Source of the DNA: Cyanophora paradoxa CCMP329
Taxonomy: Eukaryota; Plantae; Glaucophyta
Length of the DNA stretch: 64,000 bases
NCBI GenBank assembly: GCA_004431415.1
Contig: QPMI01000097.1
Location: forward strand, 127,409-191,408
Direction: 5' to 3'
Below are positions 24,001-31,692 of this stretch, piece by piece. How positions within the stretch are numbered: position 1 is the stretch's first letter; every line of letters begins with the position of its first letter. Under the pieces are notes generated by a model. It had not been told where the DNA came from. It was given only the letters and a program-made list of their open reading frames with translations, and searched no databases. A program made the position numbers and the translations under genes.

Positions 24001-26489
24001 GCCCCGCTCGCTCACCGGCTGCGGGACGGGGCGGGCGGGACGGGGAGGGGCGGGGCGCACATCGAGGGGGTCTTCGAGGGGTTCTCCCCGTTGAAGAACT
24101 CCTCGAGGTACCGCTGCTCGATGTCGTGGATCCTCGTCAGCGAGAACCTGTCCCCGCGCCCGCCCCCGTCAGCTTGAAACGGCCCCCGGGCGTGCGCAGC
24201 ACCAAGGGCACCAGGCGGAGTAGCTGGGGACGACGATCGGGGGCGGAGCGCGGGGGTCCGGCGGTGGGCTGGCGCTGGCCTCCTTGCCGTCGGCGGGGAT
24301 GGGGGTGGAGCGGTCGAGGCTGCGCGCGCGTGAGGCGGTGCGGGGCGCGGGGCGGGGGCGGGGCGCACGCGGCGAGATCGGCCTCCGAGGTGCGGGCCTG
24401 GAGGGATACGGGGAGCTCGGGCCGCGGCGGCCGCGGCACGCCGGCCTCGGAGACGTTGACCGTCCGCTCCCCCTCCTTCTTCCGCACCGGCTTGTTCGGC
24501 AGCCTGTCGCGCCCCCGTCGGCGGGGCGGGGCGGGGCGGGCGGTGCGCGGGGCGGGGCGGCGGTCACTTCTTGACGACGAGGGCGCCCTTGCGGGGCCGC
24601 TCCGCGTCGTCCACGTCCTCGTCGTTCGGGCCGAACTCGCGCGGCTCCGCCTTCACAACGCTCGAGCCGGCGCCCTCCTCCTCGTCCTCCTCCTCATCCT
24701 CCGCGTCCCGCCCCTTCTTCGAGGGCCGCTTCGAGGACGAGGGCCGCCCCGCCTCGTCCTCGTCCTCCTCCTCCTCCTCACCCCGCTCCTGCGAGCGGTC
24801 AGCCGCCGCGGGGCTTCCGCCGGAGAGAGCCCGCGCACCGCCCCCGAGGGCTTCTTGATGGCGAGGCGGATCTTCTTCGCGCCGCCCTCCTCCTCGCCCG
24901 GCGCCTGCGGTGGGCGCGCGGCGTGAGGGGCGGGCGCGGGGCCGGGCGGCCCCGCGCACTTCGCTCTCGCGGGACTTGATCTTGATCTTCAGGCCCTGGG
25001 CGCCGCTCGAGGAGGCCCCCGTCCCAGACGACTCCCGCTCTTTCCGCTTCTTCCTCGCCCGCTCCGCTGCGGCGCGTCAGAGCCGCCGCGCGTCCCGTCG
25101 CTGCCCGAGCGGGGCCCACCGTCGGCAGATGCTGCGTCGCCGTCGTCGCCGGCAGCCGAGTCGGCCTCCTGCGAACGGGGTCGGGGGCAGCGCCATTCCG
25201 AGGGGCCGGCGGGCTCGGTGGGGCCGGACCTCGCCTTCCTTGCGGGGGCGGGGCTCGTCGCCCTTCTTGCGCTTCTTCTTGGGCCGGTCGGCGCGGTCCT
25301 GCTCGCCGTCCTCGTCGGGCTCGTAGTCCCCCTCGTTCATCCACTCGTTGAACTTCTCGAGGTCCCGCACCCACCGCGCGTACTGCCCCGGCGTCACGCC
25401 CGAGCCACGCCCCCGCACGAGAGCGCCCCCGCGCACCACGTGCCACTTCTCCTTGTTCTCCTCTGCCTCGTCGTCGCCCTGCGAGAGGGAGGGCGTCGGT
25501 TGCGCGGCGGGGACCGGCGCCGCTCGCCGCCGGCCGCACCTGGACCTCCTCCGCTGGGATCCACTCGTCATACGAGTCGGGATAGTACCACCAGTGGACG
25601 AAGACGACACTGCGCGAGGGCTCCCGCTCGACGGCCCGGCAGTAGTCCGCCTCCGGCGCGTCGTTCGGCTTGTCCCGGACCACGACGTGCGTGGCGCCCG
25701 CAACGTTCGTGACGTAGCTAGCGCCGTGCTCCTTCAGGATCCTCTTCATGTCTTCCACGTCCCGCGAGGGTATGTCCGGCGAGAAGTAGACGACGGGTCG
25801 CACCCAGCGGGTGGCCTTCGGCTGTGCGGGCGCGGTCGCGTCAAAAGAAAGAGAAACTAAGCGTGCGCCCACGCGCGGCGGTGAAGAGCGGGCGGACCAG
25901 CTGCTTGTCGACAAACTTGATGATGTCAAGATAGCGGTCCCGCTTCTGCGGGTTCTTCCAGTCGAAGGACCGCCACTGTTCGCGCAGCTTCCAGTCCATG
26001 AAGGTCTCTATGATCCACGCGAGGGAGCCGTCCGGCGCGTAGTCGCGGAGAAGCTTGGCGGGAAGGCGAGTGACCGGGCGCGGCTTCGGGCTCTGCACGC
26101 GACACGCGGAGGTCCCATGAGCGGCTCAGCGGCGTGTTCTAGCTAGAGAGAAAGCAAGCGGGGCGCACATCGCGGCCGAGGTTGTCCTCCATGAACTGGA
26201 TCAGATTGGCAGTAAAGAGCGCGAGCGTCTTGGGCGACAGCGAGCCATCCTTAGCAATCGACTGCAGATTCTGCTTCTTCTGCGCATGGAGAGGCGAAGC
26301 GCTGTGAGGACCGGGCGGGGCAGGAGGGCAGCGGGTGGTGGCGCGGCGAGTTCAAAAGCTCCAGCTAGATACTGCGTCCCACCGCACCTGCAACGCGTTC
26401 GAGATGCCTGCGAACTTCTGCACTGTGGCAGGTTCCTCGAACTCTTTGACGGTCGCGCCGCCGCCGCGCTTCGTCCGCCGTACGGACAT
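21072..26489 (-). CDS. SMARCC: SWI/SNF core subunit SMARCC/SWI3 (N-terminal MarR-like/BRCT/chromo module, SWIRM, SANT, C-terminal coiled coil)
   Basis: HWWYYPDSYDEWI, FNEWMNEGDYE; SWIRM VPSYSAW|FSLTRIHDIE...VHSFLEQWGLLNY; SANT WTEEETLALLEALE...CVLRFVRLPIEEPFL; LPFTDTGNPILAQLAFLAS; KVELKLRYFEEME. Confidence 0.96.
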
Positions 26490-26670
26490 CGCTGAATTGG
26501 CCAGCGATGTCGGCCTGCGGCAGCTGCGCTTGGCTGCGTTCGCCTTCTCTGCCCACCGCCCTCTTTAAAGGGGTAGAGTTTCAAGTGGGGGATACAGGCT
26601 GTCGTTAGCGCAGCCGCCTCAATTCGCCAGGAAGCTCAGCCACTGCTGAGTTGGCGGCGTCGACCGCACG

Positions 26671-27007
26671 ATGGCGTCGCTTCTGGAGCATCAGGAGGGC
26701 CTCCGGCGCCGGCTCGAACAGGCCGAAACTGGATACCTGGAGCAGCGCATCGGCGAGTCATTGGAGCGCGAATATGCCGCTCGTCTCGACGCTGAGCTGG
26801 TGAGTTCCGTCGCGGCGAATGATGCTCGGACTTTCAAACTTCGCGCCATGGCCATCCCCTACGACTGCGCGCTGTTCTTTGCGTCACCTGATATCGCGTT
26901 TCCTTGCAGTCGAGGCGGGATCAGGAAATCAGCTACCTGAAGGGCCGTCTCCGTTCGCTCGAGCTGGAGTCTGCCCAGCCCGCGAAGGTCCGGCGGCCCC
27001 ACGTTGA
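26671..27007 (+). CDS. Small hypothetical helical protein, two exons
   Basis: MASLLEHQEGLRRRLEQAE...LRAMAIPYD, putative GC-AG intron (~26867-26909), FEAGSGNQ...AAPR*. Confidence 0.4.
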
Positions 27008-27094
27008 AGAACAAAGAGTCCCCGCCCATCCAGCGTTTTAGCCGCCTCTGTCCACGCTCCAAGCGCGGCCGGCTTTCTCCCCTCGTGCTGCTCG

Positions 27095-30000
27095 ATGCAA
27101 CGGGCGCTGCTCAACGAGGCTGGGGTGTAGCGCGCCGCCGAGCGCTTCGTGTGACACACACGCCGACCGCTAATGATATCCTCGATTCCCGCAGTATGCG
27201 TCGGACGCCGCTGGGCCGTCCTCCCGCACCGTCGTGTCGAGCCTTGCCGACACCGTCCGCTCGCTGAGCTTCGGTGCGCCGCGCTTGCTTCTGGATCCCT
27301 CCTGCTCACTGCATTTGCATCTAACTGCTCATACTTTCGCAGGCAAATACATTCGTGTCATTGCGGTCGTCCAGCTGCTCATCTGCTTCCTCACGGCGCT
27401 GGCCCGGGCAGACATCTACGCTGCCGTCGTTTTGATAGCTATCTACGCTTGCCATGAGAAGGATAAGGCGGCAATGGGAACGGTTTGTGTTCCCCTGCGT
27501 CTTTTCTGTTTCTTCTTTTCCTTGTCTGGCGATTTCTTTGCGCTTCTTCTAACAAGAGGGGTTCGTTTTCGCAGTACATCATTCTCACTCTATTCTCTAT
27601 CGTGGCGGACGTGATCTGGCTCGGTGTCCACGCGGACACGCGCCAGTTCGCCGTGACCGTCGCGTTCAAAGGCACGATGGCCTTCGTCTTCGCCATGTCC
27701 ATCCTCGGCATGCTCTTCAAGGCTCGCGCTATCTCTTCTTTTCCGATTTCGTCCCGCGTCGCGAAACTCTCTCTGGTAGGTCCTCATCCTGTGGCCGGCG
27801 TACGAGCACTACAAGAGCCTGCCCGTCGAGAAGCCCTCCGAGGCTGGTGAGACCTGGCTGCGCTCTTGCCTCCCGAGCTGCCCGTGTCTGACGCCACTGC
27901 TGTTGCACGGCAGGCTTCTCCGGCGCGCAGCAGGGGAAGAGCGCCTTCGACCGCTTCGTGTTCGGCGCGCTCCTCGTCCAATTCGTGCGCACGGCGCCGA
28001 GGGCGCTGGTCACCCGCTCGCCCGTGACGCGGAGCAGGCGGCGGTGTTCCTTATCGCGACGGAGCGCGCGGACATCTACGCGCTCGTCCTCCTCATTGCC
28101 ATGTACTCGATCAACGAGAAGGACAAGTCGGCCATGCGCGGCGTGCGCCTGTGGCCCTCCCGCCCCTCCTGCCGCCGCCGGCTCACCGCCGGGGCCAGTT
28201 CTTCCTCTTCGCGGTGCTGAGCCTGATCCTGGACGTGGTGTGGCTGGCGCTGCACCGGCTGGACCTGGACAACCTGCAGAGCATGGCGAAGAACGCGTCG
28301 GCCACCGACTTTGTCTTCGGCATGACCATCGTCAACATGCTCTTCAAGGTCCCCGCCCCGCCCCGGCGAGCCCCCGCCCCGCCCGCCCCGCCCCTCACCC
28401 CCTCGGCAGCTCGCCTTCGCCGTCATCGCCGTCCGCATCTTCACCGAGCTGCCCCAGACCAAGCCCTCCGACAAGCGCGCCGCCCTCGGTCCGCCCCGCC
28501 CCCGCCCCCGCCCCCCGCCCCGCCTCTCGCCCCCGCCTTCCGCCGACGGCCGGGCGCGCAGCTAGCCAGATGGGCCAGGGTGCCGGCTACGGCTCGCGCG
28601 ACATGCACGCGGCCTTCGCGCGCTTCGACGCCATCGCCTCCAAGCTCCCCAACGAGAAGGCCCTGTCCGCCCCTCCTCGCCCCGCCCCGCCCCGCCCCGC
28701 CCCGCCGGGTGGCGCCTGACGGGAGCGGGGTGCAGGATCTTTTTCGCGGCGGTGCAGCTGGTGCTGTGCTGCTTCGAGTCGCTGGCGCGCTGGGACGTCT
28801 TCGCTGTCGTCGTCGGCGTCTCCCTCTACGCCATCCTCGAGCGCGACAAGATCGCCATCGACATCGTGCGCCCCGCCCGCCCGCCCGCCCCGGCGCATCG
28901 CGACGCCTGACGCTGCGGGCAGTACATGGGCCTGATGGCGGTCTCGCTGGTGGCGGACCTGATCTGGTTCGGGGTCTACTCGGACCAGGACAAGTTCCTG
29001 TGGCGCACGGGCACCGTGGGGACGCTCTCCTTCGTGATCGCGATGGCGGCCCTCTCCTTCGTCCTCAAGCTCGTCTCCCTCGTCCCCGCCCTCTACTTCC
29101 GCAAGAACCTCCCCGACAAGCCCTCCGAGGACGGTCCGCCTCGCCCCGCCCGCCCCCGCGCCCCGCCCCGCCACTTGGGCGTCGCGGAGCGGGCGGCGGG
29201 GCGCAGGGATGATGCCGGAGCTGGGGATCCACGAGCGGTTCCAGCGGGCGGCGCCGGTGGAGAAGCTCTCGTACGTCATGTACGGGTTCGCGGCCGTGCA
29301 CCTCGTGCTCTTCTTCGTCGTCGCCCTCGAGCGCCTCGACCCCTTCGGCGTCGTCATCCTCGCCCTCCTCTACGGCACCCACGAGTACGACCGCCGCGCC
29401 ATCCTCGGCGTGCGCGCCCCGCCCCTCCCCGCCCCGCCCCGCCCCGCCCCGCCGGGGCGAGGCCGACGCGGGGGCAGTACATGCTCTTCATGGACCTCTC
29501 GCTGGTGTTCGACTGCGTGTGGCTGGTGCAGCACAAGACGGACCTCAACCAGATGTACGCCGCGGCCACGAACCGCCAGATCGCCAACAACGTCGCCGAG
29601 TCCACCCAGATCGTCTACGCCGCCACCGTCATCCACATCCTCGTCCGCCCTCCCCGCCCCGCCCCGCCGGCCCCGCTCACGGCGGCCCCGCTCACGGCGG
29701 CGGCAGTTCAAGTTCGCGGCGCACATCCCCGCCTTCCTCTACCTCCGCGTCCTCCCCGAGACCAAGCCCAGCGAGGACCCCGGTCCGCGCCCCGCCGCCC
29801 CCCGCCCCCGCCCCCCGCCCCGCTCACCCCCGCCCCGCAGTCATGACCTCCGCCCCCGTCGTGATGGTTGACCCCAACCAGTCGGTCGGCTACTCCGCGC
29901 CCCTCGTGCGGCCCCCGCCCCCTGGCCCGCGGCCGCGCCCTGCTGACGGCCAGTAGCGGGCCCCGCTGAGCGGCACGCCGCCCTCGGCGCCGCTCGTCTC

Positions 30001-30565
30001 GCCGGTGAACGTGCCGACCTACCGGAGCGGCGGCTCGGCGTCGCCGGCGACGGTGCCGCTGGCGCAGCCGGGGTTCGGGATGGCGGGGGGCCAGTCGGGC
30101 CCGAACGTGCTGCCGTACGTGCCGGTGATGGACGACAAGATCGACGAGATGATGGCGCTCTTCATGAACGAGTTCGGGCGCCAGATCCCCGTCAAGCTCG
30201 TCCGCCAGGGGCCCGGCATCGTCCGCCCGCCCCGCCCCGCACCCCGCCCCCCGCCCGCCCCTCACGCCCCCTGCCGCAGTACCTCTTCGGCACCCGCCGC
30301 GTCATCTGCAAGGTCCGGCCCGCCCCGCCCCTCCGTGCCCGGCGCGCGCCCGAGCCGCGCGCAGATCCTGAACGACAAGCTGGTGGCGCGCGTGGGTGGC
30401 GGCTACATGCTCATGGACGAGTTCGTCGAGACCTACGGCGCCGTCGAGCTCGAGAAGGCCCGCGCCCCGTCTCCCCGCCCCTCGCCGGCCGCCCCTGACC
30501 CTCCCACGCAGGTCCGGCAGGAGGAGCGACTCGCGAACACCATCGCCTCCTCGGCACAGTACTAG
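27095..30565 (+). CDS. Polytopic membrane protein: four tandem AGTRAP-like modules plus a C-terminal GAS2/GAR domain
   Basis: Four repeats of the pattern RxD...Y...E.D..A..|(Y/F).....S...D.(I/V)W...K...LPxxKPS(E/D); C-terminus DDKIDEMM...VKLVRQGPGI|YLFGTRRVICK|ILNDKLVARVGGGYMLMDEFV matches the GAR consensus. Confidence 0.85.
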
Positions 30566-30723
30566 AACCGTATGCAGGCTTTTCTCCGTAGTTAGGGTTT
30601 CGTGTGCACTAGTAGGTTTCAAAACCAGATCATGGCATTTGCAATCGCCACACGCGGCTGCTAGCGCGGGGGCTGATCATCAATGGGGGCAGGGGGGGAG
30701 GAGACGGCGGGGGAGGCCGGAGG

Positions 30724-31692
30724 TCATATGTTATCGGCGAGCTTGGCGGCGAGGGAGCCGATCCAGGCGACGGTCTTGTCGCTGAAGGCGCGCTGCCGGT
30801 CCGACGCGACGATGAGGACGCCCCGGCCCGCGCCGACGGGGACGACCAGCGTGTCCTGCGTGTTGGGTGCCAGGAACGGCAGGTCCGCCGCCACAGCCCG
30901 CGCCGCCCCGGCGTCCTCCGCCGGCCGAAGGTACGCCGGGTTCGAGCCCGACGGCAGTGCCGCCCCGGAGAGCCGCGAGGGGGCAGGGGCGTCGCGCGCG
31001 GCGAGGCCGCGGCGGTGGAGAACGGTGCAGGCGCCGCCCTCCGAGAGGCGGCAGACGAGGACCGAGCGGGCGGCCGTCTGCGTGCAGAGCACGTACGAAG
31101 TCCAGGCGAGCTCCTCCTTCAAGCGCTCCGGAAGCTCCTCCGCGAACTCGAAGACTTCCGCGCCCTCGAGGCCGACCGAGGTGGACGGGCGCTCGACTTG
31201 CGTGCGTCGCATGAAGACGCCGACGGCGATGAGCAGCGTCGATGCAAGCACGCCGATCATCTCGGAGCGGAACTGGCTCGGGGTCGCACTCGCCGCCGAC
31301 GTAAGGACGGCGCGGTTGAAGGCCAGCAGCGCGAGGCTGAGGACGCCAACGCCGACGCGCAGCCGCACTCCGTTCACGCCAGGAATGAAGAACCCGCCGA
31401 TGCCCTCCTCGTCCTGGCTCATGCGGCCCCGCGCGCGGCGGCGCTCCTCCGCCGTCGACTGCTCGCAGCGGGCCGGGGAGAAGCCCCACCACGCCGGCGC
31501 TGGCTGCACCCTCAACGCGATGGGAGCCGCACTGAAGCGGGTCCGGCGCGCGTCCGCCTGCCCAAGGAAGCCGGAGCGCGTGACATGCGGGCGGGCCGGC
31601 GCCGAGTTGGATCGGCACAGAAAGCAGCTGGGTGCGCTTTCGAGCACTATCCGCTGCGCCGGCGCTGCGGGGATCGCCAACGAGAACGCCAT
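30724..31692 (-). CDS. CCB2: Cytochrome b6f haem ci assembly factor, CCB2/CCB4 family (closer to CCB2), plastid-targeted, intronless
   Basis: MAF transit peptide; LLAFNR, SQFRSEMIGVLAS, LKEELAWTSYVL, FLAPNTQ, RAFSDKTVAWIGSLAAKL. Confidence 0.85.
   Translation of the reverse strand: MAFSLAIPAAPAQRIVLESAPSCFLCRSNSAPARPHVTRSGFLGQADARRTRFSAAPIALRVQPAPAWWGFSPARCEQSTAEERRRARGRMSQDEEGIGGFFIPGVNGVRLRVGVGVLSLALLAFNRAVLTSAASATPSQFRSEMIGVLASTLLIAVGVFMRRTQVERPSTSVGLEGAEVFEFAEELPERLKEELAWTSYVLCTQTAARSVLVCRLSEGGACTVLHRRGLAARDAPAPSRLSGAALPSGSNPAYLRPAEDAGAARAVAADLPFLAPNTQDTLVVPVGAGRGVLIVASDRQRAFSDKTVAWIGSLAAKLADNI

Follow-up and report, generated by a model that had tools for sequence, protein, structure and literature searches.

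A 64,000-nucleotide stretch of the Cyanophora paradoxa CCMP329 genome (GenBank contig QPMI01000097.1, positions 127,409 to 191,408, forward strand) was analysed; this whole stretch is called the window and all coordinates refer to it. The gene studied here lies on the forward strand between 26671 and 30565. It encodes a protein in which four tandem membrane modules of the AGTRAP family are followed by a proline-rich linker and by a C-terminal domain with a predicted GAR fold, the fold of the microtubule-binding domain of GAS2 and the spectraplakins. An initial annotation, made from the letters of the DNA, had put the protein forward as a candidate membrane-to-microtubule anchor.

Gene model and transcripts

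Contigs of four public runs from the same organism were placed on positions 26000-30900. They were Logan contigs, and the run type 'RNA' was a guess. Runs X1, X5 and X17, which come from three studies, were treated as RNA runs and each gave one long jointed contig. Run X16 was the DNA control; its contigs were genomic and colinear, with zero joints over the interval. The spliced contigs of the three RNA runs traverse all exons and define a single mRNA. The coding sequence (26671-30565, + strand) comprises 21 exons and 20 introns, measures 2442 nucleotides, encodes 813 amino acids and ends with a TAG codon at 30563-30565. All 20 introns were fixed by the joints together with the coordinates of the contig pieces; the letters in the gaps equal the summed lengths of the predicted exons, and the phases close. 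Eighteen introns are of the GT-AG type. The remaining two (27722-27779 and 30458-30511) are GC-AG introns, seen as skips of 58 and 54 nucleotides in every RNA run, with a cut ambiguity that permits GC..AG ends. The exons, and the intron that proved decisive for the reading frame, are as follows.

Exons 1-7, + strand, from RNA joints: 26671-26799, 26910-26987, 27195-27273, 27343-27482, 27575-27721, 27780-27846, 27914-27984
Exons 8-14, + strand, from RNA joints: 28038-28142, 28199-28348, 28410-28488, 28562-28664, 28736-28865, 28923-29133, 29207-29409
Exons 15-21, + strand, from RNA joints: 29478-29642, 29707-29782, 29841-29905, 29957-30220, 30280-30312, 30365-30457, 30512-30565
29906-29956, + strand: 51-nucleotide GT-AG intron, joint 29905>29957 in X1, X5 and X17, none in X16

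The 51-nucleotide intron carries an in-frame TAG (29954-29956) and, if it were retained, the protein would stop ahead of the GAR domain. It is spliced out in three RNA runs, so the GAR exons are in frame with the membrane part. Because a splice joins exons of one pre-mRNA, a separate GAR transcript is excluded. The membrane part and the GAR domain are thus a genuine fusion encoded by one gene, and the GAR exons do lie on the same transcript as the modules, as the initial annotation had assumed. That a membrane gene and a GAR gene, or their transcripts, were joined artificially by assembly or prediction is highly improbable. Such an artefact could be imagined, since Logan contigs can bridge adjacent genes, the RNA type of the runs was guessed and retention of the intron would truncate the protein at the TAG. 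However, the joint is a precise, frame-keeping splice seen in three studies and missing from the DNA run. Adjacent introns of 58, 51 and 59 nucleotides leave no intergenic space, and the fusion is also encoded in the transcriptomes of Cyanoptyche (MMETSP) and Gloeochaete, which were obtained independently.

The same gene is present in EukProt as a public model of 823 amino acids (P0001, Cyanophora paradoxa tig00000388_g24814.t1). All 21 exon pieces were found in it as exact, ordered substrings, and its sole difference from the RNA-supported isoform is ten extra residues (70-79). Steps that needed a whole protein were run on P0001 rather than on the joined spliced sequence; the exon pieces were searched singly.

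The start codon is the ATG at 26671, the first ATG of the RNA contig, which is preceded by an in-frame stop at 26647, 24 nucleotides upstream. The ATG at 27095, from which the initial annotation had started the protein, was rejected: it is located inside a 207-nucleotide intron (26988-27194) skipped by the three RNA runs. The two exons that precede this intron form one feature.

26671-26987, + strand: exons 1-2, N-terminal coiled-coil-like helix, residues 1-69 (joints 26798>26909 and 26985>27193)

On the raw sequence these exons resemble the tail end of a separate upstream coiled-coil gene. Helices were predicted by AlphaFold2 at residues 2-18 and 20-64, that is, a helical stretch of about 65 amino acids. 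This stretch aligns in five of six relatives (described below), the Rhodelphis protein being without it. A second in-frame donor (27017/27018) lies 30 nucleotides past the 26987/26988 donor and was adopted by P0001, whose residues 70-79 are the translation of 26988-27017. The 26987/26988 donor is used in the three RNA runs, and the 27017/27018 donor adds VRRPHVEEQR in P0001; the discrepancy reflects either alternative splicing or a prediction error.

The sequence resembles that of other GC-rich eukaryotic genes and is interrupted by numerous short, C-rich introns. Between 27125 and 30511 the introns are 76% G+C and the exons 65%; intron composition is strand-asymmetric (C 47%, G 29%). The introns consist largely of runs of the CCCCGCCCC type, with donors of the form GTCCGCCC/GTGCGCC and a branch-like CTGAC/CTCAC motif 8-20 nucleotides ahead of the AG.

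AGTRAP-family modules and their relatives

The membrane part of the protein is made of four modules.

27343-27846, + strand: module 1, three exons (Pfam AGTRAP on P0001 110-236; AlphaFold2)
27914-28488, + strand: module 2, four exons (BLASTP against module 1, expectation value (E) 2e-26)
28562-29133, + strand: module 3, three exons (BLASTP against module 1, E 1.7e-28)
29207-29782, + strand: module 4, three exons (BLASTP against module 2, E 3.7e-26)

Four homologous hydrophobic modules had been annotated over these spans, each as one exon. The homology was borne out by pairwise BLASTP of the modules (E 4e-12 to 2e-28) and the outer limits were exact, all eight being true splice sites, but each span is interrupted by one to three introns. 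Judged by their sequences, the four modules are unambiguously paralogues. The motifs R.D, E.D and D..W, already listed in the initial annotation, are invariant in four of four modules. The ending it had given as LPxxKPS(E/D) holds overall, except that module 3 is one residue shorter (LPDKPSE), so that the common form is LP(x)xKPS(E/D). Two introns, one after the second helix and one after the Lys of helix 4, occupy equivalent sites across the modules; the second of these is displaced in module 4, and module 3 lacks it. These equivalent positions are consistent with internal tandem duplication.

The modules were assigned to the AGTRAP family by profile search. On P0001, Pfam AGTRAP scored 43.6 bits against a cut-off of 25 (E 3.4e-11; residues 110-236, profile positions 9-136 of 156). 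When exon pieces were searched singly, the AGTRAP matches were below threshold, as is normal for fragments (E 2e-4 for 28923-29132, and 0.015; 21.5 and 15.5 bits). An alignment of 28 modules (A4) was then made from seven proteins and two fragments. Twelve of the 28 matched AGTRAP individually (best E 2.3e-7), with no rival Pfam family. Two residues, Asp in helix 3 and Lys in helix 4 (A4 D62 and K99), are invariant in 28 of 28 modules; in module 1 they are encoded at 27608-27610 and 27719-27721. The R.D turn, a Tyr, a Glu, a Ser and the closing Pro are almost invariant in the same alignment. The invariant Asp and Lys may form an ion pair within the membrane, or they may serve the AGTRAP fold as a ligand site.

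AGTRAP (ATRAP, PF06396) resembles the module in being a small helix bundle with conserved polar residues, and it is the transmembrane core of its profile that the module matches. AGTRAP, however, is a single module of about 160 amino acids with a cytosolic tail that binds the AT1 receptor, whereas four modules stand in tandem here, in a protein of 813 amino acids with other flanking domains. The AT1 receptor context of animals does not exist in an alga, and the sequence relation is distant.

Relatives were sought exhaustively, because the claim of a novel architecture depends on their absence elsewhere. A 49-position profile was built from four aligned module exons (A1) and run with HMMER against 1.84 billion representatives. 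Nine proteins were retained at E<=1e-3, with P0001 first, which leaves about eight relatives. Canonical AGTRAPs were not reached by this profile at that threshold; only the four-module family was. The members are as follows.

P0001: Cyanophora paradoxa, this gene, four modules, GAR present, 823-amino-acid public model
P0004: Cyanoptyche gloeocystis (MMETSP transcriptome), four modules, GAR present, 877 amino acids
P0010 and P0006: Gloeochaete wittrockiana, four modules, GAR present, 813 amino acids; P0006 is a fragment
P0003: Cyanophora paradoxa paralogue, tig00001095_g7047, four modules, no GAR
P0002: JGI metagenome, four modules, no GAR
P0005: Ancoracysta twista, four modules, no GAR
P0007: Rhodelphis marinus, modules incomplete, C-terminally truncated, GAR region missing from the sequence
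P0008 and P0011: marine metatranscriptome fragments, one module, GAR not seen

Three further searches were made with a word index. That with the full-length profile returned only the query's own protein, but the method demonstrably misses known members and its blank is uninformative. The GAR region retrieved three glaucophyte proteins only, again by a method that misses known members, and the 28-module profile gave no match, missing members of its own query too.

Common to all complete members are the N-terminal helix, module ends of the form LPxxKPSE and the Pro-rich tail; most also have a short C-terminal helix. Where it is present, the GAR domain is located between the Pro-rich tail and this helix. 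The GAR-less four-module proteins from Cyanophora, Ancoracysta twista and the metagenome share the helix, modules, tail and short acidic/basic C-terminal helix, but have no GAR domain between linker and helix. In P0003 and P0002 the C-terminus is a short conserved helix (LE..L.ERE.RL...GY) that resembles the extension of alpha-2 in the GAR domain of the present gene. These sequences give the impression of an older C-terminal element ahead of which a GAR domain was either inserted or deleted. A maximum-likelihood tree of the membrane region supported only the pairing of the GAR-less P0003 and P0002, and did not place gain versus loss of the GAR domain.

The four-module plus GAR architecture is kept in Cyanoptyche and Gloeochaete, which indicates that it is under selection. 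GAS2 domains have been reported mainly from Amorphea (PMC9145010). Nothing in the literature searched connected glaucophytes with AGTRAP or GAS2/GAR, or AGTRAP structurally with GAS2, and there was nothing on the gene identifier. The initial annotation had stated that no protein combining AGTRAP and GAR was known; this stands for the literature searched but not for sequences, as unannotated orthologues exist in Cyanoptyche and Gloeochaete. The architecture is real, expressed, conserved in three glaucophyte genera and, as far as could be searched, undescribed. What is new is the combination of a GAR domain with AGTRAP-family modules, both parent kinds being already known.

The module was modelled by AlphaFold2 from the 28-module alignment. 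Module 1 gave a four-helix bundle with a predicted local distance difference test score (pLDDT) of 91 and a predicted template modelling score (pTM) of 0.83. The full-length model contained 16 helices, in agreement with the 12-16 transmembrane helices first proposed, but its scores (pLDDT 59.5, pTM 0.36) make inter-module packing and any pseudo-symmetry unreadable. We know of no solved AGTRAP structure for comparison. Structural neighbours of the module, retrieved with VIA-align, were a uroplakin tetraspanin, a small subunit of the dystrophin-glycoprotein complex, the tetraspan subunit of Fc-epsilon-RI, CD20 and synaptophysin; their Z scores of 10-12 are those of common helical bundles, below the level at which kin can be told from them. 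A fold search of the ESM Atlas with the module returned generic bacterial four-helix proteins alone (TM 0.5-0.58), and with the whole protein no usable match.

The 16-helix array could itself be the functional core, acting as a transporter, as a channel or, like AGTRAP, as a trafficking adaptor of endomembranes. The GAR domain would then only position the organelle or vesicle that carries it, or move it along microtubules, and the protein would not be a structural anchor of the cortex. We regard this as unlikely. Each module does carry the invariant intramembrane Asp and Lys, the existence of GAR-less four-module relatives implies that the membrane part works alone, and the neighbours of the module include channels (LCI1, pannexin, CD20). 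Animal AGTRAP is known to promote receptor internalisation (PMC12972272). On the other hand, unrelated helical bundles also reach Z scores of 8-12, the best-ranked neighbours are tetraspan scaffolds that do not transport (the uroplakin, dystrophin-glycoprotein, Fc-epsilon-RI and synaptophysin proteins), and no transporter family was found in the Pfam scans.

The C-terminal GAR domain

The part of the protein that follows the modules consists of the linker and the GAR domain.

29841-30130, + strand: Pro/Ser/Val/Gly-rich linker, about 85 residues (P0001 approximately 653-734), 19% Pro, split by the 51-nucleotide intron
30131-30562, + strand: GAR domain with long alpha-2 tail, four exons (Pfam GAS2 match covers 30143-30436)
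30389-30406, + strand: R-V-G-G-G-Y hairpin, P0001 R784-Y789, aligned to MACF1 RVGGGW

The order first annotated, a Pro-rich linker and then a GAR-like string, was recovered in the spliced protein; the string itself is divided between exons 30280-30312 and 30365-30457. The linker had a pLDDT of 27-33 and no secondary structure in the AlphaFold2 model.

Both profile matches anticipated by the initial annotation exceeded their Pfam cut-offs on P0001. For GAS2 the score was 23.4 bits against a cut-off of 21.3 (E 5.4e-5; residues 739-799, profile positions 2-64 of 69). The Cyanoptyche protein P0004 and the Gloeochaete fragment P0006 scored 26.2 and 22.3 bits. With exon pieces searched singly, GAS2 was matched at E 0.096 in Pfam, and MACF1 GAR chains were the sole matches in the Protein Data Bank (PDB; E ~0.8). 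A profile of the three glaucophyte GAR domains was also compared with the PDB. Only MACF1 GAR chains were significant (E 0.001-0.002), over a region extending from the DKI(E/D) start to DEF(L/V). The feature neighbours of the GAR region in the ESM Atlas were GAS2 clusters in 30 of 30 cases.

The GAR region was modelled without templates. AlphaFold2 predicted a helix at 735-752, five strands within 757-791 and a helix at 792-822, with a pLDDT of 73-87 over most of the region. The published GAR topology is alpha1, five strands and alpha2 (PMC10656233). In Foldseek, four GAR entries were among the top matches with a probability >=0.99: 5x57 (target-normalised TM-score (TMt) 0.61), 5ve9_C (0.62, root-mean-square deviation 3.6), 1v5r (0.57) and 9kbw_A (0.56). 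Entry 9kbw is the microtubule-bound GAR domain of GAS2.

The predicted fold is the same as that of GAS2, the GAS2-like proteins and the spectraplakins MACF1/ACF7 and dystonin (PF02187; 5X57, 5VE9, 1V5R, 9KBW). Features in common with the GAR domains of GAS2 and MACF1 are the DKI(D/E) start, two strands (Y-x-F-G and (K/R)IL) and the R-V-G-G-G-aromatic hairpin. In GAS2 the counterpart of R-V-G-G-G-Y is the tubulin-contact motif formed by R252, the G254-G256 'G-hairpin' and W257. Neither the R-V-G-G-G-Y motif nor a run of five basic residues of beta3-beta4 (R, R, K, K, R) varies between Cyanophora, Gloeochaete and Cyanoptyche. In GAS2, mutation weakens microtubule binding about 70-fold for the Arg, 4- to 14-fold for the hairpin Gly residues and about 40-fold for the Trp (PMC12084551).

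There are also clear differences. GAS2 and the spectraplakins are soluble and combine the GAR domain with CH domains, spectrin repeats or EF-hands, whereas here Pfam finds AGTRAP and GAS2 only. The glaucophyte domain is anchored by 16 predicted membrane helices, has no zinc site and carries Tyr in place of Trp, and its host belongs to the Glaucophyta. On profile and model evidence, the C-terminal domain has a GAR fold without the zinc site.

Proposed function and flanking genes

With moderate confidence, we favour the reading that this single gene encodes an integral membrane protein whose probable role is to tether its membrane to microtubules. In the encoded chain, a long N-terminal helix is followed by four tetraspan modules (16 predicted helices), the Pro-rich linker and the GAR domain. 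Four repeated modules give an even number of helices, which would place the N-terminal helix on the same side of the membrane as the GAR domain. Lys and Arg are enriched at the helix 2-3 turns and in the inter-module linkers, and the start is not signal peptide-like; that side is therefore most likely cytosolic, and these features suggest that both protein ends probably face the cytosol. The linker would act as a flexible leash by which the GAR domain could reach a microtubule some nanometres off the membrane. There it would dock in the tubulin intradimer groove in a GAS2-like manner, by the conserved Arg, the Gly-Gly-Gly hairpin and the aromatic residue. Two chains may pair through the N-terminal helix and so form a bivalent anchor. 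The existence of a GAR-less paralogue suggests that the membrane array also functions independently and that the GAR version adds a cytoskeletal link.

Several observations weigh against a microtubule tether. The GAS2 score exceeds the Pfam cut-off by only about 2 bits. W257 of GAS2 is replaced by Tyr, and equivalents of R242 and K266 could not be mapped. The Cys-Cys-Asp-Cys zinc site, which has been called pivotal for the integrity of GAR domains, is absent; the C-K-C of MACF1 aligns to residues other than Cys, and each glaucophyte GAR domain is without His and contains just one Cys, a conserved residue of beta3. The degenerate GAR domain of SNAP1 from Trypanosoma brucei does not bind microtubules (PMC10656233). 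Together with the loss of the zinc site, this counts against canonical GAR membership. Finally, the topology given above was reasoned and does not come from a dedicated predictor, and the full-length model behind the helix count is poor.

The same observations bear on a second possibility, that the fold has been kept without microtubule binding, as a zinc-less protein-docking domain (for epiplast or other cortical proteins, for example), the whole being a membrane scaffold with a docking knob. This is possible but doubtful. None of the three Cys ligands of the zinc site is present, and canonical GARs are matched only marginally in sequence (E ~1e-3 against the PDB). Besides the case of SNAP1, the GAR domain of GAS2L3 binds Survivin and Borealin (PMC10656233). 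SNAP1, a protein of the microtubule quartet, is a close parallel in being non-Amorphean, in having coiled coils and in ending with a GAR-like domain without most zinc ligands. SNAP1 is soluble, however, and has lost four of five basic contact residues, whereas the glaucophyte domain retains the Arg, the GGG hairpin with its aromatic residue and a basic beta3-beta4 in three genera. These retained residues are the tubulin-contacting elements (PMC12084551), and AlphaFold2 folds the domain confidently without zinc.

Returning to the tether, the membrane concerned was considered. Microtubules underlie the cortical cisternae of Cyanophora (PMC6212826). In Toxoplasma, GAPM1a and its relatives are multi-pass alveolar proteins that stabilise cortical microtubules by a link whose mechanism is unclear (PMC6344517). 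These two facts make a cortical anchor cell-biologically reasonable. The flattened cortical cisternae would be the most attractive candidate membrane, the endoplasmic reticulum or other endomembranes being equally compatible with the data. The job proposed here is the same as that of GAPM1a, but no homology was seen (no GAPM family in the Pfam scans). A recognisable microtubule-binding domain is lacking in GAPMs, whereas the glaucophyte protein has an explicit GAR module. In its fullest and rather speculative form, the proposal is that a dimer of 16-helix AGTRAP-type arrays, each with a zinc-independent GAR domain on a leash, is a lineage-specific device that would staple glaucophyte cortical cisternae to the subtending microtubules. 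If this were true, it would be the first membrane-anchored GAR protein and the first explicit link between an alveolus-like cisterna and microtubules in any eukaryote.

Even in Toxoplasma, where GAPM is implicated, it is not settled what holds cortical microtubules to the cisternae beneath the plasma membrane, and a multi-pass protein with a recognisable domain of microtubule-lattice binders is a candidate for this function. The gene also extends the GAR domain from soluble, mainly Amorphean cytolinkers to Archaeplastida and to a membrane-anchored setting, and a naturally zinc-less GAR domain offers a test case for the role of the zinc site. As for the poorly understood AGTRAP fold, it can evidently be repeated four times in tandem; the family in which this occurs is small, with scattered members in glaucophytes, Rhodelphis and Ancoracysta.

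The neighbours of the gene are on the opposite strand. Downstream, a convergent gene (30724-31692, - strand) consists of a single open reading frame of 322 amino acids that matches Pfam CCB2_CCB4 (cytochrome b6f cofactor assembly; E 5.7e-38). Its stop codon lies about 160 nucleotides from that of the GAR gene. RNA contigs of both strands overlap there, which indicates that the 3' untranslated regions of the two convergent genes probably overlap. Upstream, a 76-nucleotide skip with CT..AC ends (26092-26169) was present in RNA contigs and represents an intron of a minus-strand gene just upstream, so that the GAR gene is flanked by opposite-strand genes on both sides. In run X5, one contig leads from 30608 back into 30280 across 11 extra letters, which is probably an assembly misjoin where the convergent transcripts overlap.

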